Assembly: GCF_018977255.1 (NCBI RefSeq)
Contig: NW_024704840.1
Coordinates: 124,001 to 174,303 of the forward strand
Length of the DNA stretch: 50,303 nt
Direction of reading: 5' to 3'
DNA from: Callorhinchus milii
Taxonomy: Eukaryota
Shown here in pieces: positions 1-38,231 of this stretch (the first letter of the stretch is position 1; each line of letters opens with the position of its first letter). Both the position numbers and the translations under genes were made by a program. The notes beneath the pieces are model-generated. The model saw only the letters and a program-made list of their open reading frames with translations, had not been told where the DNA came from and ran no database searches.

Positions 1-780
1 TGGCGAGCAGTGGTGGGGATGATCAAGCGGGGAGCACACCCCGTTGTGGCGTAACACAGAGGGAATGTGAGCCTTGGGTTTCTAAAGAGGGAATTTAGTC
101 ATAGTGGGGTTGAGCACAGGGGGTGGTAAGAGCGCGGAGGTTAAGAGCACAAGGGGAGGATTAAGTACAAGCTTTGGGGAGGTGAGCGCAGGCGGAGTGC
201 ATAGGGGATGAAGTCAAGTCGAATGGTGAATAAACCGGAGGTAATCAAAGGGCAGAGTGGACCACAGGAGAGGTAAATGAGGGAGAGGTCATATGGGTTG
301 TAAACACATGGTGGGAAGCACAGGAGGATAAGCACAAGGGGGAGTAGCACAGGGTCGAAAGCACAGGAGGTCACAAGGCGGTGAGAAGCAGGGTTGAGCA
401 GACGGGGTGTGAGCTCAATAGGGGTTCAGCAAAAGACGTGTGTGCATAGAGTGGGAGTGATCACCTGCAGGGTCAGAACCGGTGGGTGTGTGCACAGGGG
501 GCTGAACACAAGAAGTCTGAGCACAGGATGTGTAAGAACAGGGAAGTGTGAGAACATGGCAGGGTGAACAGCAAGAGAGATGCTGAAGAAAAGTGGTACA
601 GGCGATGAGTAGAAAGTGAGGAGAGTACAGTGGGGCAGAGCACAGGGGGTGAGCACAGAAGTATACGGAGAGCACCGGGGGGCGAGATGCATTGGGAGTG
701 ATCACAGCTGCTTTGAGAAAGATACGATTTGAGAAAGGTGCTGAACCAGCGCCACAAATCCTCTGCTGAACGTGTGTGAC
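1..780. repeat. Purine-rich degenerate tandem/low-complexity repeat (GAGCACAGG-like units)
   Basis: Recurrent gagcacag/gaacacag motifs about every 20 bp in a G/A-rich strand; overlapping ORFs are low-complexity and have no recognisable domain. Confidence 0.6.
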
Positions 781-895
781 ACCTCTTCTGCTAACCCAGA
801 GTCACACGTCCGCAGTTTGTTATGGTACAGATTGTGTTAATTGTATACAGGTTTGAAGCTGTGGCTGTGGAAAGTTTATTGTATGTACTTGGCAG

Positions 896-1147
896 GAGGT
901 AAGCCCCCCAGACTGGTGAACGGAGAGAGCCGGTGTGCAGGGAGAGTAGAGCTGTACAGCAATGACACTTGGGGGAGAATTTGTGGAGACACCCTGAGCA
1001 TGAAGATTGCCGGAGATATTTGCAATTATTTGCGATGTGGATTTGCTGTAACAGCCTCAAGTGACGCTCGCTTTGGAGAAGGATCGGGGCCTGTGTTTGG
1101 TCGGCCTGACTGCGCACACGGACTGGACGGTGGCATAATCTGTTCAG
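896..1147 (+). CDS. SRCR (group B-like) domain exon, internally shortened
   Basis: Acceptor ttggcag|ga. Translation KPPRLVNGESRCAGRVELYSNDTWGRICGDTLSMKIAGDICNYLRCGFAVTASSDARFGEGSGPVFGRPDCAHGLDGGIICS shows RLVxG, CxGRVE, WGxxC, FGEGSGP and GxxCS motifs. The 3' end is uncertain. Confidence 0.8.
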
Positions 1148-4100
1148 TTATAGACCACAACTACAACAAAGTGCCATTGATATGGGTGGGGTGGGGGGAG
1201 TAGGCCCAATGAAATTTTAATTTGGGGATTGTTGGCAAAGTCAACAGGAAAATAATCCCTTCCGTTATTGAATGTCGTCATGAGATTTGTTACCACTACC
1301 TGAACACGCAGTCAAGGCTACACGCAACTCCAGCTCACACTGACCCCGAGCTCACACTGACCCCGAGCTCACACTGACCCCGAGCTCACACTGACCCCGA
1401 GCTCACACTGACCCCGAGCCCACACTGACCCCGAGCTCACACTGACCCCGAGCCCACACTGACCCCGAGCTCACACTGACCCCCCGAGCTCACAGTGACC
1501 CCGAGCTCACAGTGACCCCCCCCGACCACAGTGACCCCGAGCTCACAGTGACCCCGAGCTCACAGTGACCCCGAGCTCACAGTGACCCCGAGCTCACAGT
1601 GACCCCGAGCTCACAGTGACCCCGAGCTCACAGTGACCCCGAGCTCACAGTGACCCCGAGCTCACAGTGACCCCGAGCTCACAGTGACCCCGAGCTCACA
1701 GTGACCCCGAGCTCACAGTGACCCCGAGCTCACAGTGACCCCGAGCTCACAGTGACCCCGAGCTCACAGTGACCCCGAGCTCACAGTGACCCCGAGCTCG
1801 CAGTGACCCCGAGCTCGCAGTGACCCCGAGCTCGCAGTGACCCCGAGCTCGCAGTGACCCCGAGCTCACAGTGACCCCGAGCTCACAGTGACCCCGAGCT
1901 CACAGTGACCCCGAGCTCACAGTGACCCCGAGCTCACAGTGACACCGAGCTCACACTGACCCCGAGCTCACACTGACCCCGAGCTCACATTGACGCCGAG
2001 CTCACAACTGACCATGAGTTCAGATTGATTTGAGCTCAAACTCAGCCCGAGGTCACATTATACCGACCCCCAGCTCACATTGAGCTCGAGCTCACACTGA
2101 CGCCCAGCTTATACAGAATCGAGTTCACAATGACCCCCAACTGACTCTGACCCTCGAGCTCACGACGAACCCGAGCTTAAACTGTCCCCGAAATCACACT
2201 GACCCTGAGCTCAATTGACCTCGAGCTCAAACGGAGCCCGAGCACACGCTACACTGACCCCCATCTTGCACTGACGTTCCAGCTTACACTACTACCCAGC
2301 TCACACTGAGCCTCGAGCTCTCACTGATCCCGAGTTCACACTGAGCCACACCCAGCACTGAGACCGAACTCACAATAACAAAAGCTCACACGGAGAACGA
2401 GCTCACACAGACCCCAAGCACATATTGATATCGGAGCTCACATTGACCACGAATTGCTGCTGACTCCGAGCTCACACTGAGCCCCCGAACTCACACTGAC
2501 TCCCAACTCACACAGACACGTAGCTCAGAGAAAGGCTGCACCCAAATTCAAAATGCGGTTCTTCTGTCAGTTTACAGCTAACTCTGACTTCGCATTAACC
2601 CCGATCTCACACTGACCCTCAGCTCACATAGACACTGACTCTGAGCTAACACTGATTCTGAGCTAACACTGACTCCGAGATAACACTGACTCCGAGCTCA
2701 CAGAAAGTCTCACCCAAACATCAAAAAAATGCTTCAATACGGAGGAATTGCAGCGTCAAACCAAGACACGTAGTTGGAACAACCCACATTTCTGTCTCGT
2801 ATTAAACCTCAGACAGAAACAGTCTCACAGAGTGAGGCTGGGCTTATTTTCGACAATGATGTTCACTGTCACAGAACAGATCAGAGTGAGTGTTTGTGAG
2901 ATTATCTTTACTGTGTTTTGATTTCAGATCCACTTCAGAAAGCCATCATTTCCCTGAAGCCAGATTCCCGGGTGTTTGTGAGAGGGGAAAGCGCTCAGAT
3001 CTCATGTTCTGGGAATTATCCTGACAGCAAATTCTCTTTATACATAAACGGCAAGTTTTTAACATCACGGACAACTCCGGAAAACATCCAAACGGCAAAT
3101 TTCACCCTATCGGATTTCAGTGCAGGAAATTACACGTGTAAATACACTACACATATAGACGGACGAGAGTTCACATCCCCAGCGAGCGAACGAGTGGGAA
3201 TCTCTTTGTGGGGTAAGATCTGAGTAAGATTTCACGGAATAACCTGTTTGTGTTTCTCTCACGAATCTGTTAAATGGCCGTTCGCTGCCGTTGGTTTATG
3301 GTAGAGTTAGTCACAGATCCACCCTCCAACTACAACTGCCACCCACACCGCTCAACACCCATGCTCACCCTTGTACCAACCACTCAAAGATAAAAGTCTC
3401 CTTCCATTCCTCACTTTCCTCCTTATTCCATTTTACACATTCTATTCCCCAACCCTTCATTACTTCTATTACTCATCCTCACGCACATTCTATTCCTCCC
3501 ATCCACGCATTCTATTTTTCCTACACACTGACTCTCACGCACAGTCTCCCTCCCTCCCACACCTTTTACTCTCCTCTCCCTCCTGTGGAAGTCTTGCTAC
3601 CTCATGGATGTATCTATACTGTCTGATTCCAATCCCGCTTCAGTCAATGATTCCCACCATCTTACTCCACTGTATGTGAAGTCGTTGCACCTAAATTTTC
3701 TGTTTGTTCCCCTGGATGTGATCGTATCCTGTTATTTAAATGCATCTGAAGGTCAGTTGAGAGTTTCTGTCTGCATTCCCGGTCACACGACCCTGGCTAT
3801 AGCTTTGTGTTACATCAGGCCACGGCCTCACTGCCCTCCACGGCCACCCCAGTGCCAGCCGTTGACCCCTCCCGAGGTTTAAAGAAACATATGCTCGGTC
3901 CTGTCCTGTAACTTTCGCTTAACCCTTGCCTCTCCCAGTCTTCATGATGCTTCCTTCAGGCTGAGAAATAAGCAAGTAGACAGTTTTCCTCTGAACCGAA
4001 CAGTTTTCATGTCACGGAGCGAGTGTTTTTGAGATGATCTTTAGTTTAATTCCAGAACCGCTCCAGAAACCCACCATTTCCCTGAAGCCAGATTCCCGGG

Positions 4101-7100
4101 TGTTTGTGAGAGGGGAAAGTGTTGAGATCTCATGTTCTGGAAATTATCCAGGCAGTAATTTCTCCTTATACAGAGAAAGGAAGTTGATCTCATCACAGTC
4201 GGCTCCAGAGAATAACAACACGGCAACATTCGCCCCATCGCAAATCAGTGCAGGAAATCATTCGTGTAAATATGCTAAACAGACAGTCGCACGCGAGCTC
4301 ACATCACCAGAAAGCGAACGAGTGGGAATCTTTTTGTGGAGTAAGAGCGAGATCTTGAACTCTCTCATCAATTGGTATTCACTGTCCCCTTGTATCCAAT
4401 CACTGCGATCAGAGCGAGCATTCTCACTTTACTCTATATAATTATAGACCTATACAGCACAGAAGGAGGCCATTCGGCCTCTCGACCCTATGCCGACTCT
4501 TCGAAAACAGCTAGCCGATTCAATCCAACGCCCCTGTTCGCTCCGTACCCTCTGTCCCACAACCTGATACCCTCTTACACCTTGATATCATCCCACATCC
4601 CCATTGCCGACCACAAACTCTGTTACTTCCACAACGTCTGTTCCTAACGTCCACCCCTTGGTACCCTCCAATAGCTTCTATTCGCCTCTCCCTCAATCCA
4701 TCCCACACCACCTCTCCCTTCAAAATCCACTATTCCCTTGCCACTCATGTGAAGGTCTCTCTACATCTTGAACGTATCTAGACTATCTGATTCAATCCTA
4801 CCTTGAGGCTATGGGCTCCAAAATCTCAATTCCCTCATTGAGAAGTCGATGCTCCTGAATTCTCTGTTTCATCTTTTGGTTCTGATTTTATTCTGTTGTT
4901 TAAAGTACGCCTGAAGATCACACGAGCAGTTCACATTAAATTCCCATTCTAGCTTCCTAAGCTGGAGCTCGTTGTTGTACAGTCGCTGGCCCCATTGCGT
5001 TCCCTCTCCTCCGCTCTCAGCCGTTGCTCCGCTCCCTCTGTGAAGAGAAACACTTGCTGTAATCTGTTCCGAACCTGCCCCTCAAAACTTTCCGCTCGTA
5101 ATTACGCCTCCTCCAGGCTGGGAAACAAGGAAATGCTCACCTTTACTCTGAACGGAGCAGTGTCTCTTTCACAGAGCGATTATTTGTGAGATAATCGTTA
5201 CTGTGTTTTAATTACAGATCCGCTCCCGAAACCCACTATTTCCCTGAAGCCAGATTTCCGGGTGTTTGCGGGAGGGGAAATCGCAATGATCTCATGTTCT
5301 GGCAAATATCCTGGCAGCAATTTCTCTCTGTACAGAGACGGCGAGTTTATCTCATCACAACCAGCTCCAGAAAATAACCAATCGACCACATTCACCCAAT
5401 CGGACATCAGTGCAGGAAATTACTGGTGTAAATATACTGCACACATAGAGGGACGAGAGATCACATCACCAGAGAGCGATCGATTGGCAATATCTGTGCG
5501 GGGTAAGAGCGAGAGCCTGCACCCTCGCCAACCAATGGTACCTTACTGCCCCCTAGTGTCTATTCACCGCGATCACAGCATACCTCCGCCCCAACCTCCC
5601 ACTCCTTTATAGAAACACAGAATTATTAGCATGGCAGGAGGACATTCAGTGGAATATACTTGTGTTGTTTCTTTGAAAAGAGCTATCCGATTCAATCCCA
5701 CTCTTCCGCTTGTCTACTCTCTCTCCCTCTCTTTCTCTCCGGAAACTTTGCCTTCCCAAATAATTAGCTTCTTTCCCTATCTTTGTGACACGAGTCAGTC
5801 CCCATTCCTCCCTTCCTACTTCCCGCTGATTGCCTCGTTGCCTCCCACAGACAGCCTGCCTCAATCTCTCTCCTTCACAGAAGCTTTCGACCCTCCGTCA
5901 CATATACTAATACCCTCACATACCATGATACACTCCCACACACTTATTGCGTCACACACACTCTGTTACTCCCACACTAATTATTTCTCCATCCCATCCA
6001 CTAAACAACGCCCAAATATTCTAATCCCCTCTTCGTCATTCCATCCTACAGTCCAACGCAATTGAAAAGTCTTAGTCCACTCTCGCTCATGTGAAGTTCT
6101 CAATGAATCTAGAATATCTGATTCAATCCTAGCTTCAGGCAGCGATTTCCACCATCACATTTCCCACTGGTGAATCTCTTGCTGCTTAAATCTTTTTTAT
6201 ATTGCCCGATTGTGATCTGTCACCCTCTTCCCCTCTCCCACCTTTTCAGCGCCAATCTCCCATCCCCTCCTCTCTCCCTACACCACCATTCGCCAGTCCC
6301 ACTCTATCCCGACTCTCCACGTCTCTACCCCACCTCCGTCTACGTTTCCCCCACTTGCTAAGCTCGAGACCCTCTTGTATCATATACAGTGTTGATGCTT
6401 GTATTTCGGTGAGTGCCAAAAGCCAGCATTTAAGTTGAGGTAAATGCTAATGTTTTTCTTGCTAAATGCATAAAACATGTCATTGAGATGGAGCGATGGG
6501 CGTCCATCGCTCCCGCTGGTTTTCATCTCGGACAGGAGATGAGAAGAATTACTCTCTGCCCGTATTGATTTGTCTGCCCTTCCAGGTCCTGGCCATGGCC
6601 CAGCCTGGGCTTTTATGCCAATAGCAGTGAGTGCAACTTGATAGTCGGAAACGCCTGGCTCAGGAACGGGACTCGGGTCCAATCAGTAGTTATTCGATTC
6701 TGATATTCCAAGTCCATCTTTCCCTCTCACCCACCCCACCTCCCCCCCACACCATAAACCACCACTGCACGACTCACCCCTATTTGTTATTATAATCAGG
6801 ATTTGCATTCCATTGAGTTGTTCATGTAACAGTGAGGGTTGATGAAGGAAATTTAGTTGTTCTTGTGTACGTAGACTTTCAAAATGCGTTAGTTAAGGTG
6901 CCAAAACAGTCTGATTGGCAGCATTGAAGGCCATAGGTTTAAGGGAAGTGTATGGAAACATGGATCTAACATTGGCTGGAAGCAGACCGCAGTGGGTAAT
7001 AGTGAACTGTTTTCAGGCTGGAAGAAAGTATACAGTTGTGTCCCCCAGGATACGTTACTAGTGTTAATGTTTTTTGAATATATTAACGATCTATACTTGG

Positions 7101-8789
7101 CTATATATGCAAAATTTTAATGTTCGCAGATGGCACAGAATTTGGAAGTGTTGCAAAAATGAAGGAGGATGGCAGCAGACTGCAGGAGAATACCGACGGA
7201 ATGGTGAAATGGGCAGACACATGGAAGTAGCTAATGCAGAGCAGTGGGAAGCGATAGATTTTCAGAAGAGGAATGAGGAGATGCAATAAACAATAAATGT
7301 GGCAGTTCTCAAGGGGGTGCAGATGCACAGAGACCTGGGTGCACATAAGCAATTCATTGTAGGTGCCGGAACAGGTTGGCGAAGCATCTAAAAACAAGCA
7401 TACATTATACTTGGGTTGATAAATTTAAAATGCAAGAGTAAGTAGCTTCTGTCAACCTCTGGTAACAGTTAGTGAGATGTCAGCTGGGTTAATGTTTCCA
7501 ATTGTTATCACCACACATTATGAAGAATGCTAGAGACTTGTCGCCTTGTGGAGGGTACTGAGGACATTGATCAGGATGAAGGACGTAATTACGTTGAGAG
7601 ACTGGAAAAGCTGTTCTTCTTAGAGAAGTGATTTAGAATGATGTACAGAAAAAGCGGTAGAGGCATGAGGAGGATTGTTTTGATCCAGGGAGTTGGTTGG
7701 AATGCACTGCCTAAAGTGTGGTGGAAACAGATTCGACAACAGCTTTCAAAGCAGCACTAGATATGTACTTAAAAAAGAAAAATAATGCAGGTCTACGATG
7801 TAAGATCGTGTCATTGGGACGGTTTGGTTGCTCTTCAAAAACTCTTCGCCGTACGCGCGAAGTGCGAAATGACCCCCTTCTGTTTTGCAACATTATATTC
7901 TCTATGATTCCACATAAGAGGTTGTGGTACTTGTTCCCCGTATCCGCTGAGTTCCTTCCTCTAATCCTTCTTCTTAACCACCCTTTGTCTGTCCATAATC
8001 TCATTTGTTGTTTTACCTCTTTAGCTGCTCCTATGTTCACATTTCCCACCTGCTCTCCCGTGGTTGGCAAACAAAGGTTCTCTGTGCAGCGCTACCAGGC
8101 GCTATCCTCTGTGAAGGGACCGATATAAATGTTGGATGCTGTTGTTGTAATCGTCCTTTTGATTTGTTAATCAGGAGATAACTTTGCAAGCTGCTTTGCA
8201 TTCCAGCCAGAGCCAAACATCCATAATAATAATAATAATAATAATCCTTGCATTTGATATAGCGCTTTTCGTGTCAGGAGGATATCCCAAAGCGCTTCAC
8301 AGAACACACTGTAAAATGAATTGTATATTTGTGGGCGAACGCAGCAGCCAATTGCGCACAGCAATGTCCCACAAACAGTCGTAGATTGAAAATGAACAAT
8401 TTGTTATTGTTTTTGGTTTTTGGAGGGATTAGCACAGGTTGAACTATAGTAATATCCAGCAGAGGTGATGGATGTTGTGTCTGTGCTTCTCTATAAAATT
8501 GCAATCATTTCAGTCGTGTTTACTCCACAAGGGATGCACATCCCCGCTATATAGATATCCGGCTGACCAATGATACATCGGCCACTCGAATAATCATGAT
8601 TCAGTCACTGACCAGTGTTGTATCTGTGTCTTTTTCACAGGTTACTTGACTACTCAGAGAATTGCGAACGTCGTCCGCCTCATCCTGGTTCTCGCGTTGT
8701 TTCCGGTAATTATTGTCGAGCTCGTGGTTCAACATCGACGAATAAAAAAGGATAACAGTCAAGAAAGGGTCAGTGAAGACACGACCTGA
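896..8789 (+). CDS. Multi-exon type I membrane receptor: shortened SRCR + 3 LRC-type C2 Ig domains + Arg-containing TM + short tail; signal-peptide exon not found
   Basis: Exons 896-~1147, 2928-3212, 4056-4340, 5218-5502, 8641-8789. All acceptors are AG and phase 1; all Ig donors are GTAAGA in phase 1. Ig1-Ig2-Ig3-TM splice in frame to TGA at 8787-8789. The SRCR-to-Ig1 junction is inferred because its donor is not canonical. Confidence 0.75.
1336..2710. repeat. 17-bp minisatellite (CACAGTGACCCCGAGCT / CACACTG variant); near-perfect 1336-1990, degenerate to ~2710
   Basis: Direct tandem copies with 17-bp period; blocks of CACACTG, CACAGTG and CGCAGTG variants. Confidence 0.95.
2928..3212 (+). 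CDS. LRC-type C2 Ig domain exon 1
   Basis: tttcag|at ... tgg g|gtaaga, 285 nt. DPLQKAIISLKPDSRVFVRGESAQISC-SGNYPDSKFSLYING...ANFTL...AGNYTCKY...SPASERVGISLW, with FxLY in place of the C-strand Trp as in LILR/OSCAR/VSTM1-type domains. Confidence 0.9.
4056..4340 (+). CDS. LRC-type C2 Ig domain exon 2
   Basis: tccag|aa ... tgg a|gtaaga, 285 nt. PLQKPTISLKPDSRVFVRGESVEISC...FSLYRE...ATF...AGNHSCKY...SPESERVGIFLW. Confidence 0.9.
5218..5502 (+). CDS. LRC-type C2 Ig domain exon 3
   Basis: ttacag|at ... cgg g|gtaaga, 285 nt. DPLPKPTISLKPDFRVFAGGEIAMISC...FSLYRDG...AGNYWCKY...SPESDRLAISVR. Confidence 0.9.
6830..7780 (+). mobile_element. Degenerate CR1 LINE reverse-transcriptase fragment
   Basis: Frame-broken remnants of VY.DFQ.A..KVP, VPQG, YINDL, FAD.T..G, LQ..D....WA..W, LERLEKL and VG.WNALP..VVE motifs. 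Confidence 0.8.
8223..8431 (-). mobile_element. DeuSINE-like SINE, 5'-truncated (young type)
   Basis: Reverse complement of the tail ctgtttgtgggacattgctgtgcgcaattggctgc...gaagcgctttggga...aaagcgctatatcaaatgcaagga(tta)n. Confidence 0.85.
8641..8789 (+). CDS. Transmembrane + short cytoplasmic exon of the Ig receptor
   Basis: Strong acceptor gtgtctttttcacag|gt (phase 1). GYLTTQRIANVVRLILVLALFPVIIVELVVQHRRIKKDNSQERVSEDTT*: hydrophobic span with Arg near its N-end, Glu near its C-end, then a basic stop-transfer RRIKK. Confidence 0.8.
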
Positions 8790-11329
8790 ACTGTCCACTG
8801 ATCTCTTGAAAGCTCTCGTAATCCAGCTGGTGTCTAGATTACCCTCCGTCTAAATCAGCAGAATCTTTCTCACACTGTTGATTACATTTCTTCCCTTTGC
8901 TTTTGCCTCAAACACCTTGATGCACTCACTTCCCAGTTCTCCGTCTCCTTTTTCCTCCTGTGAGAGTTGAAGAGGGACCTTCAGGGATGAGCGGCAAAAT
9001 GCACCTGCCTATAATCAGACCAATAGCCATTCCCACATTTGATATTGCAGTTGTCACACCAGGGAAACGTCTGAAAGCACTTTTCAAGATGTACTGTTGA
9101 AAGACGAGGTTATTTGGGGGTAAACGCGGCAGCTAATTTGTGCACAGCAATGACCCAGAATCAGCCAGCAAGTTAATCAAACCAAAGAATCGTATGATTT
9201 ATTTTGTAGGCGTACACAGATATATAATAAAGTTGCTTTGCGGTGGATTAAGATGGAATATTTCTTTCTGTTTGATTACTCATTAGCACATCAGCAGGTT
9301 CAGAGGGAGATGGACTTTGGGAATGAAGGATTAAGGTGTCAGTTGGAAATGAAGGGAGACTTAAAATGCGAAACAATATACTATTTCATAGCACACTTCA
9401 CATCAGGAACATGCCTGCAAATGATGTGCACAGCTGACTACACTACCTTGCTGCTATTTGCTTAAAACCATCCATTCCACACTGAGAGCTTCACATATAT
9501 GGTAATAATAAACAGATCCTACTTTTTTACCTTTGCTATAAAGCCTTTCTTACCCGGAGAATTTCTCAAAGGGCTTCACAGAATATACTGTTAAGTGCAG
9601 TGACTGTGAGTTTTTGTGTGATTGCCGCAGCTATTTTTTGCAGAACACTGACAACATGTGGACCTTTCCTTCTGTGTGGAATGGAATCGGTGCTCTCTGA
9701 CAGTGATGCTCCCTGGTCAGCTGTGCTTGGCATTAGAATGACACATAATAGGAATATATTTGTACTTTTGATCAGCTTTGCTCAAATTAAATATGCAGTT
9801 GTAATCGTTTTAATATTTTAACGTTTTTTATTCTGTTAAGCTGACTACTGTGCTGTTTTGGTGTGCATTTTACATATAATAGGGATGATCTGACATTAAC
9901 TCTTTTGCAGCTTTGCTTAAATGAAAGTCCGCTACTAAATTAATTACGCTATAAATCTTTAAAACCTTTGAAGTGAAACAGAGTTGTTTCTGCAGCTCAT
10001 GGCCTTCCTGTGCCTGTGTTTTCCAGCGAGGTTTTAATAACAATTTTGTGAAGTTTCCTTGACTGATATTTGTTGTCCTTCCCTTGCTTGGTTGGATATG
10101 TTGTGAGAAGATGGAATGTAGCAGCAGATATTTTGTACGAAAAGTGGAAAAAACAAACAAGGAAACGGTGTTAACGGTGCAAAGATATAACTTGGGTGTT
10201 GAGTCGTTATTAATGAAGTTCCCTTATCTTCTGTTCTTGCTGATGTGCTCCAACAGTGAAGGAAAGTTTTGTTGGATGGTATCCGTTGTGTAAAAATCAA
10301 GAGCAATGCGTCTGATTGTTTTGTTGTAAAGTGGGTTGATTGGAAATGGGGAAACGCTGTATATGTGTGTGATAATGACTTGTCTCAAGTCGAACATCCT
10401 TTAGTGAGAAGAAGAAGACAATACAGACCAATTGGCAACATTCCCTTTCTATATAAAAATGTTCTTAGTTCAGATCCTACACTCCATAAATTTGATTATC
10501 TCGGTGTTCGATATCTGAAAATCAATAGTTACTGAAGTTTTACCTCCTCTCCTCTCACCTAAGCCTTAATATTTCCGTCTTTGCGTACTCTAGATCCTAC
10601 CTCTAACACCATCTCCAGTTTGTCTGCACAAGTTGCTTCTTCTGGTGCCCCCGCACAGTCTGGTGCAACGCTCTTGAGGGCTCTCTCCTTGGTGGTCTTC
10701 TCTTTAACATTTTCGTGCTCGTTTTTATAGCGGGTGGGATATTTGGTAGCAGAGGGTCATGCTACAGCCTTGTTTCTGTCTGAAACTGTAGATTCAGACA
10801 GAAACAATTGCTGCACAAATTGCTAAAATACATCCTCTCCTCGATTCCTGTTCACACTCTCACTGCCAACGTACCGAGATGTTAAATGAACTCTCCATAA
10901 TTAAAATTTACTATTTTTATTTAACTGCCTTACCTGACTGCATGTTACTTCTTCTGCTTCTGTTCTGCCACACTGAGGACTGCATCAACCCCACAGAAAT
11001 TTAAGCAGCTCCTACTCAAATGCTGCCCCATTGACCAATGGAACCATTGCTCAATGGGAAAGGATGTGCGTACGAGATAACAGCAATAACATGACAATAC
11101 TAACACGCAATTCATGCTGAGTTATATTGCCTGTTGAGCGAGTAACCACACTCCACATTGCGTGTGTCTTCCTTGAATCGAAATGGTAGTTTAAGCTGAA
11201 CAACCCCCAAATGAACCACTCTGCTTATTCCCCAACTCCGAAATAAAATCCTCGTCTGCCATGACCTCTCCACTCCTGTTGTCACCACTTATATTCTTGC
11301 ATTTGTCACACACACTTGGTCACGACAAG

Positions 11330-11630
11330 GATTTTCTCGCCGGATTATCCAGTTTCTCCTTATAATATAAAGACAATGCAGAACTTTCCAGATTATGTCC
11401 TTTTCCACAAAAGGCTCCACAAGTCTGTGACCGCATCTTTCTTGGCTCCGTTTGGTCTCCAAATCCCCCAGCAAATTGGTTTCAAGATCCTAGTCCTCAA
11501 GTTCAAATATAAATATTACTGCCTGAACTCAACCACTGTGACAGCTTCAAATTATAACGACCAGCCTGGTCCCATCATAAGTCAAGCCTCGCTATCTTTA
11601 GAAACTCTACCCTACGTGTCCAACCATCAG
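11330..11630 (+). mobile_element. Degenerate L2-clade LINE ORF2 C-terminal fragment
   Basis: ORF 11316-11798 contains QN...VL...QIPQQIGFKILVLKFK, resembling L2 LHWLPV..RI.FKIL.L.FK. Confidence 0.6.
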
Positions 11631-11643
11631 TTATCGGGCGATC

Positions 11644-11901
11644 CAGATCAGGGCGAAACCTTGGGCAAGTTTCCTTACTCCACACGCCTAATAATAATCA
11701 CTCCAATAAAACAAAAGAAGATCAAAATTGGTCATTTTCAATCTACGACTGTTTGCGGGACATTGCTGCGCGCAATTGGCTGCCGCGTTCGCCCATAAAT
11801 ATGCAGTCAATTCACTTTAAATTGTTTTCTGTGAAGCGCTTTAGGACGTCCGCCCGACGTGAAAAGCGCTATATCAAATGCAAGGATTATTATTATTATT
11901 A
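11644..11901 (+). mobile_element. DeuSINE-like SINE, partial head
   Basis: gggcgaaaccttgggcaagtttccttactcc...ctgtttgcgggacattgctgcgcgcaattggctgcc...aagcgctatatcaaatgcaaggattattatt. Confidence 0.9.
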
Positions 11902-12198
11902 TCGGACAATCTGCCTGCACACTCTCTGTAACTCAATCCCAGAGTACCCTCAAGCCCAACGTGAGGGGCGACTTGTTAATGCCAATTGTTGTTGTTGTTA
12001 TTGAAACCAGGACCAGCTCCATCGCACATCTCTTTCATGGGCCGTATCAAGACCTTCCTCATTCACCTCGCTCTTGTTTATCTTTCTCTTTCCCATCCAA
12101 TTGGCAAATACCGCTTCCTCCGGTCTCAATATTCCATGTTCAAATGTGTGAGTGTTAATTATTTTTACTTTATACAATTCCATGCACTACCGCGCGTG

Positions 12199-12518
12199 AA
12201 TAATAATAATATTCCTTGCATTTGATATAGCGCTTTTCACGTCGTGTGGACGTCCCAAAGCGCTTCACAGAACACACTGTAAAGTGAATTGACTCTATAT
12301 TTGTGGGCGAACGCGGCAGCCAATTGCGCACAGCAATGTCCCACAAACAGTCGTGGATTGAAATTGACCAATTTATTATTGTTTTTGGTTGTGGAGGGAT
12401 TATTATTAGGCTCTGTGTGGAGTAAGGAAACTTGCCCAAGGTTTCGCCCTTCCTGGAATTGAACTCAGGTCTCTCGCTTGCAAAGCGAGTGCTTTAACAC
12501 TGAGCTACAGGACTCCAC
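12199..12518 (-). mobile_element. Full-length young tRNA-Ala-headed DeuSINE-like SINE
   Basis: Reverse complement begins gtggagtcctgtagctcagtgtta (A box), ctcgc-tttgcaa-gcgag anticodon arm, gagttcaattcc (B box), and ends in a (TAT)n tail. Confidence 0.92.
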
Positions 12519-12954
12519 GTATGTAGTTTGATAGAAGCAAATGATAGATGCAAAAAACCTTGACTTTCCAGGGCCCCGGGACGTCTTTCCGACTTGAAGG
12601 GCACGATAAAAGTGTGTAATTTGTTTATTTTGTTGCTCCATTTGTTCTTCTTGTGCTTCCTGTAAAATATTTTCAATTATGTTGCTCCTTTCTTTCTGTT
12701 TTTATTTCATTCTGCGCTTAATTTTATGTATTTTGTGTGTAACTTCTTTTCAATTCACAATAACAAATTTAATCCAAGTGTGACATTTGCAAATCTCAAG
12801 TGGATGATTAACTTGTTTGTTCATATGTCTGGAACTAATTGCACTCATGATGCCAGATGTAGTTTCATGTCCCTATAAGTACAAATTTATTTCAGTGTGA
12901 CGGCAGTGTGTTCATCGAAGTCTCTGCCTTCAGCAACAATATGTAAAACAGAGA

Positions 12955-15900
12955 ATGGATTATCCAACGTTGTACACAGTAATGGCTATTTACTACCCCA
13001 TTCTTGCAGCGGTTGGGATTCCTGGTAAGTCTATTTGGTCGCAATTATCAGCAATGGTCATCAGTTTACTGCATTGGGTGACAGAAGATATTTTGTTAAG
13101 TGACATATCAGGTTATTCATGTGCGTAGAGAAATATGTATGTGTCGAAGGACAGTATCTTTTAATACGGAAAGAAAAAAATGTACTAGGGATTAGATGTA
13201 CGTAAGTCTATGAAAGTAGCATCAGTAGTGGAAAGGGCTGTGTTAAATGGTACAACAAGATTTACAAAGATTGCACGGCACGGAAGGGGGACACTCAGAT
13301 GAATCTGATCATGTTGGTGTTTACAATGGCACCCCCAAGGCACCTCCTAACCTGTCCGACCTCTTCCCTCCACACTCTACACAGAGCGCCTCCTGCTTGT
13401 AACTTGCACCCTCCGCCCCAATATTGGAGGTCGCGCTTTCAGCCACAACGCCCCCTAAACACTGGAACATTCTCGCTCAATACTCCCGCCTTGTCGCCTC
13501 TCTCCCCTCTTTAATGTACCGGCTGAAAACTTTCCTATTCGAACGTGTTTACGGTATCTTCCCCCTTCCCCCCGCCTCGCAATTAGGCTCCGCCACTCTT
13601 GAGCGCTCTGAGACGCTATCCTGCCAGCGGAGCGCTTCATAAGTGGAAATTGTTCTCCGCTGTGTTGTTGTAATCCACTGGCGTCGTTATTCCTTACCAT
13701 AGCCTTGTATTCCCCTCTCATTCTGGCGAATATCTATTTTCCTCTTCAATGCACCGAATAAAATCATCACTTCAGGCAACAAGCTCAACATTCTCTCTGC
13801 CTCTGGGTAGAGCAATTTCTTTTTGATTCCATCATCGCTCACTTACACTTGTGTCCCCTGGTAACGTACTCCCTATAGAATGTCAACAGCTTACCCAATT
13901 GGCACAACCTACACGACACGATAGATCCCGAAATATCTATCCTCCCGACATCCGTGACCAGGATCACTCGATTTCACGTTCTGCATTACCCACCTCAGAC
14001 CGTGTCCCATATCCAACATATAAAACCCTCAGTGATAGACGGATCGATTTCGTAATCGTCACCCTTACTCACAAATCAATTCAAGTCCTGTCACCTCCCT
14101 GAACTCCTCACCTCTCCGAGCTGCTTACATTGCATAACTGTAACCCGGTTTGACTCAGTTGGCTTCCCTTCCATATGTTTCTTATCCTCGTTACCATCAG
14201 TGGCTGTGGTTTGAGACACTACCCATCTGAAACTCCAGAAATCTCTGCCTCAATGCCTCCCCTGTGTATTCTGGTTGCCTGTTTTCCGAACTTGTCTGAT
14301 TACCTTCCTCTTTGATAGAGTCAATGATCACTTCCACAGTGTCTCCTCAGTTTGTTGACAAGACAAGTTGCTTTTCAACACACATGGATACTCCGTGCTT
14401 GAAAGTTATTTTTTTATATGCAAGCTACTTTTGCCGACAGAGTTCAAACAGGAGCGTAGTGCAGGAAAATGAAGCTATATTTCTAACTTTGNAAAAAAAA
14501 CATTGCTAAGGCAGCAGCTGGAAATATGCATTCAGTCTCTTTTTAGGAAACAAGTCAAGGATTTGGTGAGTTAAGAAAAGCTTTACAAGAATGTGATACC
14601 AGGGATGATGGACATTGGTAATGAGGAACGATTGGACAAGTTGGGTCTATTTTCGTTTGAGCAGTGAAGGTTGGTAATGGAACTTATAGAAGTATAAAAA
14701 TATGTAGGATTTTGTAAGAGTGAACAGTGGGAAACTATTTACACCAATAGAGTATCGCTGTCTTGCGGCCAAAGTTACAAGTTAGTCACAAGAAGAAAGA
14801 AATATGGAGCTTTTGTTGATCTTTTTTATTCAGCATGTTGTTGGGATGTGGAATGGCCCAGCTATTGAGGTGATAGAGGCATAGCCCGTTTTGGGATTAA
14901 AGAGGAAACTGGATACATTTTTCAAGAAAAGTGCCTTAGAAGGTGATAAGGATATTTTGGACAGTAAAACCGAACAAAAATTTTCTTCCAGGGGCCAATG
15001 AAGACCCTCTCGGCCGCATGGATTGCTTTGTGTTGTACAGTTCTCTGGTTTTATTATAACTTCTCTGAATCGAAACTGGTTTCCAATCTGCTGTAATGTT
15101 TGTAGCATTTAATCCAGATATACTGTTGATAAAAAGAATTGATTATTTTATATCTGAAAAATCAAATTGAGCCATATTGCGGGAGCTATATAGCAAAAGC
15201 TCCACACAAAATAATTCCCAATATATTTTATTCCTGACAAAGATTACTTCAGATCTTCTACCTTATTGTTATATGGAACAGAGGAATATGATTGCAAAGC
15301 ACAATAACTGTAGTGGGTAATATTATTTTACGTCAAGATTGATTACTTGTATAAGCAAGTGTTTCAATGTTTACTATGGAAGATAAATGGTTGCACGAAA
15401 TTATCAAATTCTTGTTTGCTTATGCTCTGTTATCGCCAGTTCCATTCAATGAAAACGCAACCATATATGACACATCTTTAAATTTTTAACATAGCAATTT
15501 TTATTTGTATAAGTAACGTCTTCTGCTTCTATTGCTTCTCGCAGTTAATTTGCTGGCGATTGCGGTCCTGTTAAGAGGAAAGTGCGGTCTCTCCAAGTGC
15601 ATCACTCGCTATTTGGTAGCCATGGCAGTGGCGGATCTCCTGGTTGTCCTTGTAGATGTGTTGCTGAATAAAATAAACAATCTGTATTTCCCATTAAATA
15701 TCTTATTCTACACTCCAGTGTGTAGTACGAGAGTTGTGTTGTTTTGTGTCGCTATCCACAGCTCTCTGTGGTTCACTGTGGCTTTCACTTTCGATCGTTT
15801 TGTAGCCATTTGCTGCCAAAAGCTGAAACCAATATATTGCACGGAGAGGGTAGCCACAGTGGTTATTGTAACTCTGTCTATTTTCATCTGCTCACTGAGC

Positions 15901-16455
15901 ATTCCCAGCTATTTTGCGTTTGATCCTTACATTATAATTAACAATACCCCATGGTACTGCGCCTTCAAATCAAGCTTTCATAGGTTGGACACCTGGAAAG
16001 CGTTTGAAAGGCTTCAACGTGTTGTTCTTCCCGTGTTTGGTTTTGCTTTCATTTGCCTGTTTAACGCTCTGACTATCAGGCATATTATGATGGCCAATAA
16101 AGTCCGCAGGAGGCTTCGGGGTCAGAGAAATGCTGAGAAAGCAATTGATCCAGCATTGGAGAACCGAAGAAAATCGGTCATTTTACTCTTCGCCATATCG
16201 GGCAGTCTTTTACTGCTTTGGTTAACTTTTGTTTCATATTCCTTCAAATGGCAACTTTCCAATTTTAATTATACTGCAATATTTTCCAATAATAAGCGGT
16301 ACATAGTGCAAGAAACCGGAATCATGCTTCAAACGTTGAGTTGCTGTACCAACACCTGCATTTATGCTTTGACTCAGACCAAGTTCAGAGAAGAGCTTCG
16401 GAAAGGAATAGTTTATCCATTTCATATCGTTGCTAAATTCATAAAGTTATGGTGA
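12955..16455 (+). CDS. GPR139-like: Orphan class A GPCR, chondrichthyan GPR139-like; exon 1 12955-13024, exon 2 15545-16455; 326 aa
   Basis: Exon 1 MDYPTLYTVMAIYYPILAAVGIP g|gtaagt joins cgcag|tt AAT (V-NLLAIAVLLRGKCGLSKCITRYLVAMAVADLL). Seven hydrophobic helices, FTFDRFVAIC (DRY-like), TM7 SCCTNTCIY, intact frame; AATAAA at 16705-16710. Confidence 0.9.
13310..13650 (+). mobile_element. L2-clade LINE 3' end in GPCR intron
   Basis: Remnants GGRAFSH, HWNIL (LWNSL), RLKTFLF, and the tail gagcgctctgagacg...gagcgcttcataa. Confidence 0.75.
13660..14300 (-). mobile_element. CR1 LINE 3' fragments in GPCR intron
   Basis: Reverse complement shows a degenerate WN.LP..V.....F..ALK/LD region and a CR1-like 3' end. 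Confidence 0.5.
14550..14800 (+). mobile_element. CR1 LINE ORF2 C-terminal fragment
   Basis: tttacaagaatgtgataccagggatg...gaggaacgattggacaagttgggtctattttcg...gaacttatagaagtataaaaa resembles FTRMIPG...EERLDKLGLFSL...LIEVYK. Confidence 0.75.
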
Positions 16456-19005: not shown

Positions 19006-19669
19006 AATAATAATAATAATAATCCTTGCATTTGGTATAGCGCTTTTCACGTCGGAACGACGTCCCAAAGCGCTTCACAGAACACACTGTAAAGTGAATT
19101 GACTGTAAATTTGTGGGCAAACGCGGCAGCCGATTGCGCACAGCAATGTCCCACAAACAGTCGTGGATTGAAAACGACCAATTTCTTGTTATTGTTTTTG
19201 GTTTTTGGAGGGATAATTATAATGTGGAGACCTGTAGCTCAGTGGTTAGAGCACTCGATTTGCAAGTGAGAGACCTGAGTTCAATTCCAGGCAGAGGGCG
19301 AAACCTTGGGCAAGTTTCCTTACTCCACACAGAGCCTAATAATAATCCCTCCAAAAAACCAAAAACAATAATTAAATTGGTGATTTTCAATCTACGACTG
19401 TTTGTGGGACATTGCTGTGCGCAATTGGCTGCCGCGTTCGCCCACAAATATACAGTCAATTCACTTTACAGTGTGTTCTGTGAAGCGCTTTGGGACGTCC
19501 TCCCGACGTGAAATGCGCTATATCAAATGCAAGGATTATTATTATTATTATTATAAGGCTCTGTGTGGAGTAAGGAAACTTGCCCAAGGTTTCGCCCTCT
19601 GCCTGGAATTGCACTCACGTCTCTCGCTTGCAAAGCGAAAGCCCTAACCACTGAGCTGCAGGACTCCAC
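19006..19669 (-). mobile_element. Minus-strand young SINE (19006-19223 tail half, 19555-19669 head half) split by a nested plus-strand SINE
   Basis: The two halves join at the internal ggagggattatt...aggctc site seen intact in the copy at 12199-12518. Confidence 0.9.
19224..19554 (+). mobile_element. Full-length young DeuSINE-like SINE (nested)
   Basis: gtggagacctgtagctcagtggttagagc head, B box gagttcaattcc, (TAT)n tail. Confidence 0.93.
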
Positions 19670-21652: not shown

Positions 21653-21978
21653 GCGGAATCCTGTAGCTCAGTGGTTAGAGCACTCGCTTTGCAAGCGAGA
21701 GACCTGAGTTCAATTCCAGCCAGAGGGTGAAACCTTGGGCAAGTTTCCTTACTCCACACAGAGCCTAATAATAATCCTCCAAAAACCAAAAACGACAATA
21801 AATCGGTCATTTTTAATCCACAACTGTTTGTGGGACATTGCTGTGCGCAATTGGCTGCCGCGTTCACCCACAAATATACAGTCAATTCACCTTACAGTGT
21901 GTTCTGTGAAGCGCTGTGAGTCGTCCTCCCGACTTGAAAAGGGCGATATCAAATGCAAGGATTATTATTATTATTATT
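21653..21978 (+). mobile_element. Young SINE inserted inside an older SINE (old head ~21549-21652, old body ~21979-22260)
   Basis: Complete young head and (TAT)n tail; the flanks continue the old-type sequence ttactcc...gcgtctgtttacctagc. Confidence 0.85.
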
Positions 21979-23287: not shown

Positions 23288-23736
23288 ATGAAGCGCGAAT
23301 ACACTTTACTCTTCATCCTCCTGAAAGCTGCCGTGTTCCTATGGGGTGAGTATGTTTCACAGATGAACCCCACTTGCGCTTTCCGAGAAATTATATTTAA
23401 TTCGACCACAATTAACGAGTGAGTTTCACTAACTGATTTTCTTTCGTTTACCAGGAGTCAGTGGTCAGGAGGAAGTCTACCAGACGCCACTCTCTGTGAC
23501 TGTTGGGGAGAAGGAAAATGTGCTTATCAATTGTTCCGCAAAAGGAACGACTCAAACTTTACAGTGGTACAGACAGTATCCGAACCAGGCTCTCAAACAC
23601 TTGGTAACAGGAAAGACAGGAGAGCAGCAGAAGGAGAGGATCACAGCAACAATGAACTATAAAGAGAAGGGCAGTAATCTGAGCATCACAGGCACAGAAG
23701 TGACAGACGCCGCCACCTACTTGTGTGCAGTGGAGA
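23288..23736 (+). CDS. TCR alpha-like V segment V2 (family B); leader 23288-23345, V exon 23455-23736
   Basis: MKREYTLLFILLKAAVFLW g|gtgagt; ccag|ga. VSGQEEVYQTP...INCSAKGTTQTLQWYRQYPNQ...DAATYLCAVE. Confidence 0.95.
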
Positions 23737-23775
23737 CACAGTGACACAGTCACATAGAGAGGCCGTACACAAACC
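23737..23775 (+). other. 23-RSS of V2
   Basis: CACAGTG, 23 nt, ACACAAACC. Confidence 0.97.
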
Positions 23776-37169: not shown

Positions 37170-37580
37170 AGAGAGACAGAGCGAGACTGAGAGAGAGTGA
37201 GAGAGCGCGAGTGAGTGATAGATANNNNNNNNNNNNNNNNNNNNNNNNNNNNNNNNNNNNNNNNNNNNNNNNNNNNNNNNNNNNNNNNNNNNNNNNNNNN
37301 NNNNNNNNNNNNNNNNNNNNNNNNNNNNNNNNNNNNNNNNNNNNNNNNNNNNNNNNNNNNNNNNNNNNNNNNNNNNNNNNNNNNNNNNNNNNNNNNNNNN
37401 NNNNNNNNNNNNNNNNNNNAGCGAGAGAGAAAAAGAAAGAGAGCGTGAGTGTGTGTGAGAGCGAGAGATAGAGAGAAAAAGAGAGAGGGAGAGTGAGTGA
37501 GAGAGAGACAGAGATAGAGAGAGCGTGAGAGTGATAGAGAGAGAGAGAAAGAGAGAGAGAGAGATGAGAGAGAGAAGGAT
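37170..37580. repeat. (GA)n-rich tract containing an assembly gap (N at 37225-37419)
   Basis: GA repeats on both sides of 195 Ns. Confidence 0.95.
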
Positions 37581-37907: not shown

Positions 37908-38231
37908 GTGGAGTCCTGTAGCTCAGTGGTTAGAGCACTCGCTTTGCGAGCGAGAGACCTGAGTTCAATTTCAGGCAGAGGGCGAAACCTCGGGCAAGTT
38001 TCCTTACTCCACACAGAGCCTAATAATAATCCTCCAAAACCAAAACCAATAATAAATTGGTCATTTTCAATCTACGACTGTTTGTGTGACACTGCTGTGC
38101 GCAATTGGCTGCCGCGTTCGCCCACAAATATACAGTCAATTCACTTTACAGTGTGTTCTGTGAAGCGCTTTGGGACGTCCTCCCGACGTGAAAAGCGCTA
38201 TATCAAATGCAAGGATTATTATTATTATTAT
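37908..38231 (+). mobile_element. Full-length young DeuSINE-like SINE
   Basis: gtggagtcctgtagctcagtggttagagc head through ...tatatcaaatgcaagga(tta)n. Confidence 0.93.

Follow-up and report, generated by a model that had tools for sequence, protein, structure and literature searches.

Our analysis shows that positions 8641-8789 (+ strand) of a 50,303-nucleotide stretch of the Callorhinchus milii genome (RefSeq assembly GCF_018977255.1, contig NW_024704840.1, positions 124,001 to 174,303; hereafter the window, meaning the whole stretch that was analysed) are the real last coding exon of a receptor gene, in which a shortened SRCR exon is followed by three immunoglobulin (Ig) exons of the leukocyte receptor complex (LRC) type and by this terminal exon, encoding the transmembrane (TM) helix and the cytoplasmic tail. 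The outer third of the helix carries an Asn-x-x-Arg (NxxR) motif, and we consider it probable, at roughly 60%, that the exon provides an anchor of activating type, whose Arg would dock it onto an Asp-bearing dimer of the zeta/gamma type. This adaptor-docking reading draws on the depth of the Arg in the helix, the Asn three residues before it, the adjacent Thr/Gln stretch, a tail free of signalling motifs, the LRC-type ectodomain and the presence of a His variant in one paralog.

The terminal exon opens behind a polypyrimidine tract and AG acceptor (ctgtgtctttttcacag, 8623-8640, + strand; tttttcacag/gt, with the AG at 8639-8640) that is strong. The colinear copy of the gene on contig L001 is identical over about 57 bases spanning this junction, of which some 41 precede the exon. 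The exon begins in phase 1, which suits the three Ig exons upstream, all with phase-1 donors; G5502, at the end of the third of these (Ig3), and GT8641-8642 make up a Gly codon, and the frame is continuous from Ig3 into the terminal exon. Taking this junction Gly as residue 1, a stalk of six polar residues (G-YLTTQR, the six being counted after the junction Gly) leads into a helix of 23 residues, Ile8 to Val30, that contains Asn10, Arg13 and Glu27. The motif itself, Asn10-Val-Val-Arg13 (AAC GTC GTC CGC), occupies 8667-8678 (+), with Arg13 as the sixth residue of the helix, towards its N-terminal (outer) end, and Glu27 (GAG, 8718-8720, +) is found above the inner end at a distance of three to four residues. 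On the inner side of the helix, a stop-transfer run, QHRRIKK, is followed by twelve more residues and by the TGA stop at 8787-8789. Stalk, TM helix, tail and stop are thus all encoded by a single exon, and a candidate polyadenylation signal (AATAAA, 9226-9231, +) is found about 440 bases past the stop and is conserved in L001 at 8381.

A preliminary description of this DNA had quoted the encoded peptide, which is indeed the translation of 8643-8786 (+), together with the stop at 8787. It had also given the tail 11-12 residues: this agrees with the twelve residues counted after IKK, but from the end of the helix the tail measures 19 residues. None of these is a Tyr, and the expected lack of an immunoreceptor tyrosine-based inhibitory or activation motif (ITIM or ITAM) is borne out. 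In regard to the TM prediction that had been suggested as a check, the 19-residue Kyte-Doolittle mean peaks at 2.77 inside the exon despite the charged residues, which is the maximum on the + strand across 5.5-15.5 kb, the remaining peaks not exceeding 2.13. A chance open reading frame is ruled out, because the same exon is present in three annotated C. milii proteins and holds the strongest hydrophobic peak in 10 kb.

Upstream of the terminal exon and on the same strand (+) lie the shortened SRCR exon of the gene (896-1147) and the exons Ig1 (2928-3212), Ig2 (4056-4340) and Ig3 (5218-5502). Each Ig domain is encoded by one phase 1-1 exon with an AG acceptor and a G/GT or A/GT phase-1 donor; the junction Gly codon takes its first base from the donor of Ig3 (G/GTAAGA). 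The three Ig exons match the Pfam models Ig_2, Ig_3 and the HIDE1 Ig model. Among solved structures, Ig3 matches LILRB2 (4.9e-13), PIR-B (2.1e-9), KIR3DL1 (2.3e-6), OSCAR (4.9e-6), GPVI (1.9e-5) and NKp46 (5e-4), with LILRB1 and LILRA2 also among the matches, whereas the first FcR-like protein, FCRLA, appears only at 1e-3. Since the best matches are LRC members and an FcR-like protein comes first at that level, the ectodomain is, judged by its sequence, of LRC type and related to mammalian LILR/KIR/OSCAR.

The protein search with the Ig3 frame returned exclusively Callorhinchus milii proteins. Three C. milii gene models, all of them automatic, share the terminal exon. XP_042202631.1 (P0007; 'alpha-1B-glycoprotein-like', 422 amino acids) comprises a shortened SRCR, three Ig domains and the terminal exon, and the contig that carries its gene, L001, is colinear with window positions 759-13042 at 87-93% DNA identity, introns and flanks included. 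XP_007909116.1 (P0010; 'DMBT1-like') has a signal peptide, a shortened SRCR, one LRC-type Ig domain and the terminal exon, and XP_007882626.1 (P0006; uncharacterized) bears an unrelated V-set plus C2-type Ig ectodomain on the same terminal exon. Over this exon, identity to the window copy is 79% for P0007, 64% for P0010 and 60% for P0006. The Ig-to-TM junction and the stop are common to the window gene and the three models, and the number of Ig exons varies. In the P0007 model the last Ig exon is spliced to the terminal exon through the predicted Gly codon and the protein ends at the same TGA, so that the direct joining to the last Ig exon that had been supposed for the window gene is seen in its colinear copy. 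Together, the Ig exon matches and the recurrence of the exon in the three models lend support to the initial assignment of 8641-8789 as the TM/cytoplasmic exon of an LRC-type Ig receptor.

The family also has relatives with an uncharged TM helix and a multi-exon tail, P0009 and P0003. With charged-TM members and uncharged-TM, multi-exon-tail members side by side, it therefore shows both of the TM types that characterise paired receptors; when the uncharged TM exons of these two relatives were used as tblastn queries, neither the window nor L001 yielded such an exon. P0009 ('IGSF1-like', L002 34706-36538) encodes a full-length SRCR and five LRC-type Ig domains, and its uncharged TM exon precedes two small cytoplasmic exons, the tail being without a clear ITIM. 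In L001, positions 1208-4901 hold four Ig exon units against three in window positions 2928-5502; the third unit of L001 (about 3450-3740), skipped by the gene model, is a pseudo-exon in which two stops occur and a Cys is changed to Tyr. About 50 intron bases ahead of each Ig exon resemble one another, which points to tandem duplication of units of about 1.1 kb.

Within the terminal exon, residues were compared across four copies (window, P0007, P0010 and P0006) and codons against L001 only. Invariant in all four copies are the stalk T-T-Q, Asn10, Leu20, Ile24, Ile25, Leu28, Val29 and most of the tail, including the block N-S-x-E-R-V-x-E-D-T-T and the stop that follows it. The Asn three residues before the Arg is accordingly kept in every copy, and position 13 is Arg in three of the four and His in P0006, in keeping with the earlier claim of an Asn-x-x-Arg at the outer part of the helix. 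That claim had also counted an acidic residue as part of the signature, and this element does not hold: Glu27 is private to the window copy (codon GAG, against CTG in L001); P0007, P0010 and P0006 all have Leu instead, so the residue does not mark the family. In P0006, a Glu occurs four residues beyond this position. On a helical wheel, the conserved positions 10, 13, 17, 20, 24 and 28 fall within about 80 degrees and the most variable positions lie opposite, which in a comparison of four sequences only is suggestive of a conserved helix face; the position of Glu27 falls on the same face. Separately, the position encoded at 8733-8735 is a Tyr at the inner membrane edge in P0010 and P0006 and a His in the window copy and P0007; the Tyr context in P0010, I-Q-Y-R-P-I, fits the ITIM pattern, but it stands directly against the membrane.

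Among LRC receptors, the NxxR TM subtype has an Arg that FcR-gamma association requires; this Arg is preceded by an Asn and accompanied by an outer D-Y-T block and inner acidic residues (PMC6557307). Guselnikov and Taranin described this helix as the most conserved LRC element, traced it only to amphibians and birds, and called the time of origin of the family and the reason for the conservation of the helix unclear (PMC6557307). In Xenopus, receptors of the FCRL-like and SLAM-like kinds also use the NxxR TM (PMC6557307; for the FCRL-like XFL, PMC2413239, PMC4536121), the NxxR TM promotes the association of XFL with FcR-gamma (PMC2413239, PMC6557307), and surface expression of receptors with this TM requires or benefits from FcR-gamma (PMC2413239). 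Assembly of human CD89 with the gamma dimer needs the Arg near the top of the TM domain and both Asp residues of the dimer; an Arg-to-His substitution still works, and a role in orienting the helix may fall to the polar Q and N above that Arg, in QNLIR (PMC13107469). Zeta-zeta or zeta-gamma dimers serve NKp46 and NKp30, whose Arg lies in the upper half of the helix (PMC13107469), and one basic residue against two acidic residues is the general rule of receptor assembly (PMC1440944).

The window exon shares with the tetrapod NxxR subtype the outer-helix Arg, the Asn three residues before it and the polar Thr/Gln-rich stretch just outside the membrane, as well as the short Tyr-free tail, the LRC-type Ig domains and, in the window copy, an acidic residue near the inner end. 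The reuse of the cassette on a second, unrelated Ig ectodomain, here in P0006, is likewise found in Xenopus. It differs in its host, a holocephalan, whereas the published range of the motif is amphibians and birds; in the block G-Y-L-T-T-Q, which has the Tyr and Thr but no Asp of the D-Y-T consensus (PMC6557307); in three extra residues (R-I-A) before the Asn, unlike the tetrapod layout; and in the inner acidic residue, which is not conserved in the chimaera family. With human CD89 (FCAR) the exon has in common that the Arg close to the helix top is preceded by a polar Gln and Asn (PMC13107469). The natural His of P0006 matches the substitution that CD89 tolerates; in contrast, the Gln is adjacent to the Asn in CD89 and four residues earlier in the window exon, and the CD89 tail is longer. 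As in the window gene, the TM segment and tail of CD89 are encoded by one exon. CD89 is restricted to placental mammals (PMC4016189).

The terminal exon supplies the receptor with a membrane anchor and a short tail that carries no signalling motif. On these grounds, we propose that Arg13, one turn below Asn10, would pair with both Asp residues of an ITAM dimer of the zeta/gamma family whose chains are disulfide-linked (an 'RDD' assembly), as an Arg so placed does in LRC, FCRL and SLAM-like receptors of tetrapods, and that this dimer, not the receptor tail, would do the signalling. The window gene would then be the activating-type member of a chimaera family that has uncharged-TM, longer-tailed partners. 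We infer, rather than observe, both that the Arg docks an adaptor and which adaptor it may be. In this regard, 'FcR-gamma' is too specific a name for the partner, because FcR-gamma has been reported as not found in cartilaginous fish, and to speak of a zeta/gamma-type dimer is safer. CD3-zeta is present in cartilaginous fish, which makes a zeta-type or ancestral zeta/gamma chain the cautious candidate.

A number of points weigh against this proposal. Akula et al. reported no FcR-gamma, FcRL or LRC-type genes in cartilaginous fish, the elephant shark included (PMC4016189); beyond that survey, nothing relevant was found in the literature on FcR-gamma, CD3-zeta or LRC/LITR genes in sharks, and these genes go unmentioned in the main text of the elephant shark genome paper. 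The LRC-type Ig exons described here show that the survey missed at least those, and FcR-gamma may therefore have been missed too. A profile built from three of the exons and run against 1.84 billion proteins recovered nothing but C. milii proteins and a single spurious repeat protein. Searches of the PDB with the terminal exon gave chance matches only, a 48-residue query having little power and homology not being excluded by this result, and word-based protein searches restricted to the exon, as well as the ESM Atlas, yielded no usable homologue outside C. milii. As no tetrapod match was obtained by profile, the motif could be convergent with that of the tetrapod NxxR exons and not homologous to it; the likeness lies in the motif, in where it sits and in the kind of ectodomain. 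The spacing also departs from that of tetrapod members, in which the acidic residue lies about 17 residues past the Arg (14 for Glu27 here) and the distance from the Y-x-T-T-Q block to the Asn is three residues shorter. Moreover, the receptor relatives on which the comparison draws are automatic gene models.

Amino-acid constraint adds to these points. Relative to L001, the ratio of non-synonymous to synonymous substitution rates (dN/dS) is 0.65-0.93 over the exons and 0.89 in the terminal exon (11 non-synonymous and 4 synonymous changes), with seven of the 11 replacements located in the helix, and purifying selection on the terminal exon is not demonstrable in this comparison. Constraint judged from this pair is weak, which makes the survival of Asn and Arg in it statistically uninformative; the evidence for constraint on these two residues comes from the more distant copies. 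The pattern fits a fast-evolving immune receptor family. Two further points concern the integrity of the window copy: the canonical GT of the SRCR donor is lost (TGTTCAG/TTATAG at 1141-1152, against TGTTCAG/GTATAG at 603-614 of L001), and no leader exon was found in window positions 1-895.

These last two observations could mean that the terminal exon is genuine but belongs to a recently disabled or decaying paralog, in which case the exon, and Glu27 above all, would be uninformative on function and Glu27 would be neutral or mildly harmful. We regard this as unlikely, even if the window copy may be impaired by the loss of the canonical SRCR donor, where the sole nearby GT (1147-1148) would shift the frame relative to Ig1. 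Such decay would fit the lost donor, a dN/dS near 1 across the exons, the lack of a leader exon within the window and a private Glu27 that is two base changes away from the CTG of L001. It would fit, too, the fact that no protein for the window copy was found among the protein-search results, although length limits and clustering of these searches could have hidden one. Against it stand five open exons whose AG and GT sites are intact save for that one donor, and, all exons being of phase 1-1, skipping of the SRCR exon would preserve the frame. Ig2 is intact in the window, whereas its L001 counterpart is dead, with stops and a lost Cys. Over the four exons shared with L001, 85 of 960 coding bases differ without a stop or an indel; in the intron adjoining the terminal exon, mismatches are about as frequent, but 26 gap openings occur over 2.9 kb. 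Neutral simulations put the probability of seeing no stop at 2.4% if all changes fell on one lineage and at 15% if half did, and together with the stop- and indel-free coding sequence they indicate that the reading frame was protected for most of the divergence.

Another explanation would give the motif a different meaning: the Asn-x-x-Arg could be convergent, or could serve a DAP12/DAP10-like partner, a chimaera-specific partner, or retention in the endoplasmic reticulum (ER) that limits surface expression. The undetected sequence link to tetrapod NxxR exons, the reported absence of FcR-gamma from cartilaginous fish (PMC4016189), the shifted spacing of the flanking polar residues and the role of unassembled polar TM residues as ER quality-control signals (PMC13107469) all speak in its favour. 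We nevertheless hold it to be improbable, since an Arg within the uppermost third of the helix, an Asn at -3 and an LRC-type ectodomain reproduce the exact setting of the tetrapod motif (PMC6557307), and the His found in one family member still supports gamma-chain assembly in CD89 (PMC13107469). The DAP12-coupled type, represented by activating KIR, TREM and NKG2C, was considered and set aside: the basic residue of the window helix is an Arg at position 6 of 23, with an Asn at -3. DAP12 partners usually have a mid-membrane Lys. Activating KIRs, for instance, carry Lys (PMC6557307). As for the preliminary suggestion that a donor at 8769 might add a longer tail, which would then come from downstream exons and might bear Tyr, the sequence is there (AGG/GTCAGT, 8766-8774, +) and would leave the frame in phase 0, and uncharged-TM relatives such as P0009 do have multi-exon tails. 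This donor is weak, however, with a C at +3 (T in L001); the P0007, P0010 and P0006 models read through it to the same stop; all four copies conserve the six residues beyond it (V-S/I-EDTT) as well as the stop; and the conserved AATAAA lies downstream of the stop. An exon that is not terminal is, then, very improbable.

With respect to its surroundings, the receptor gene adjoins a GPR139-like G protein-coupled receptor (GPCR) gene and a V cluster of T-cell receptor (TCR) alpha type, and no LRC framework genes that would mark synteny with the LRC are seen in the window. The GPCR gene, an intronless 307-codon rhodopsin-type gene at 15532-16455 (+; Pfam 7tm_1, 1e-16), is situated between the receptor gene and the V cluster, with GPR139 as its nearest relative of solved structure (2e-6). 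Window positions of about 21300-50100 hold at least eleven V-segment exons, every one on the + strand; one of them (23433-23741) matches TCR alpha chains at 1e-14 to 1e-15, and the V end of a TCR alpha/delta-type locus therefore falls within the window, with the LRC-type receptor gene as neighbour. An interspersed repeat of about 250-330 bases, 86-91% alike and in both orientations, recurs at 8225-8431, 12199-12450, 19007-19554, 21655-21977 and 37908-38231, the first of these copies lying within the intron just upstream of the TM exon, and L001 carries it too (10788-11662). At 37225-37419, 195 N in a row are bordered by a simple CT/GA-rich repeat.

The sequences discussed here were already public as automatic gene models, and what our findings add is the recognition of what they are. 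Published surveys reported neither LRC-type receptors nor FcR-gamma in cartilaginous fish (PMC4016189), yet the chimaera has LRC-type Ig domains together with an exon of NxxR layout, and this exon is present in at least four chimaera copies, on two different ectodomains. If the resemblance to the tetrapod receptors reflects homology, the origin of the receptor module shifts back to the base of jawed vertebrates. We tentatively suggest, as a possibility that we rate somewhat below even odds, that jawed vertebrates inherited the NxxR cassette and LRC-type Ig receptors from their common ancestor, which would place both before the origin in bony fish that has been proposed for LRC receptors and FcR-gamma, and that in chimaeras the cassette was shuffled between SRCR plus LRC-type Ig and V-set plus C2 Ig ectodomains, pairing with a zeta-like or ancestral zeta/gamma chain. 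This raises the question of which Asp-bearing chain serves in a lineage where FcR-gamma has not been found and, if the proposal is true, the chimaera would become a system for asking what the Asn-x-x-Arg helix does besides supplying an Arg.

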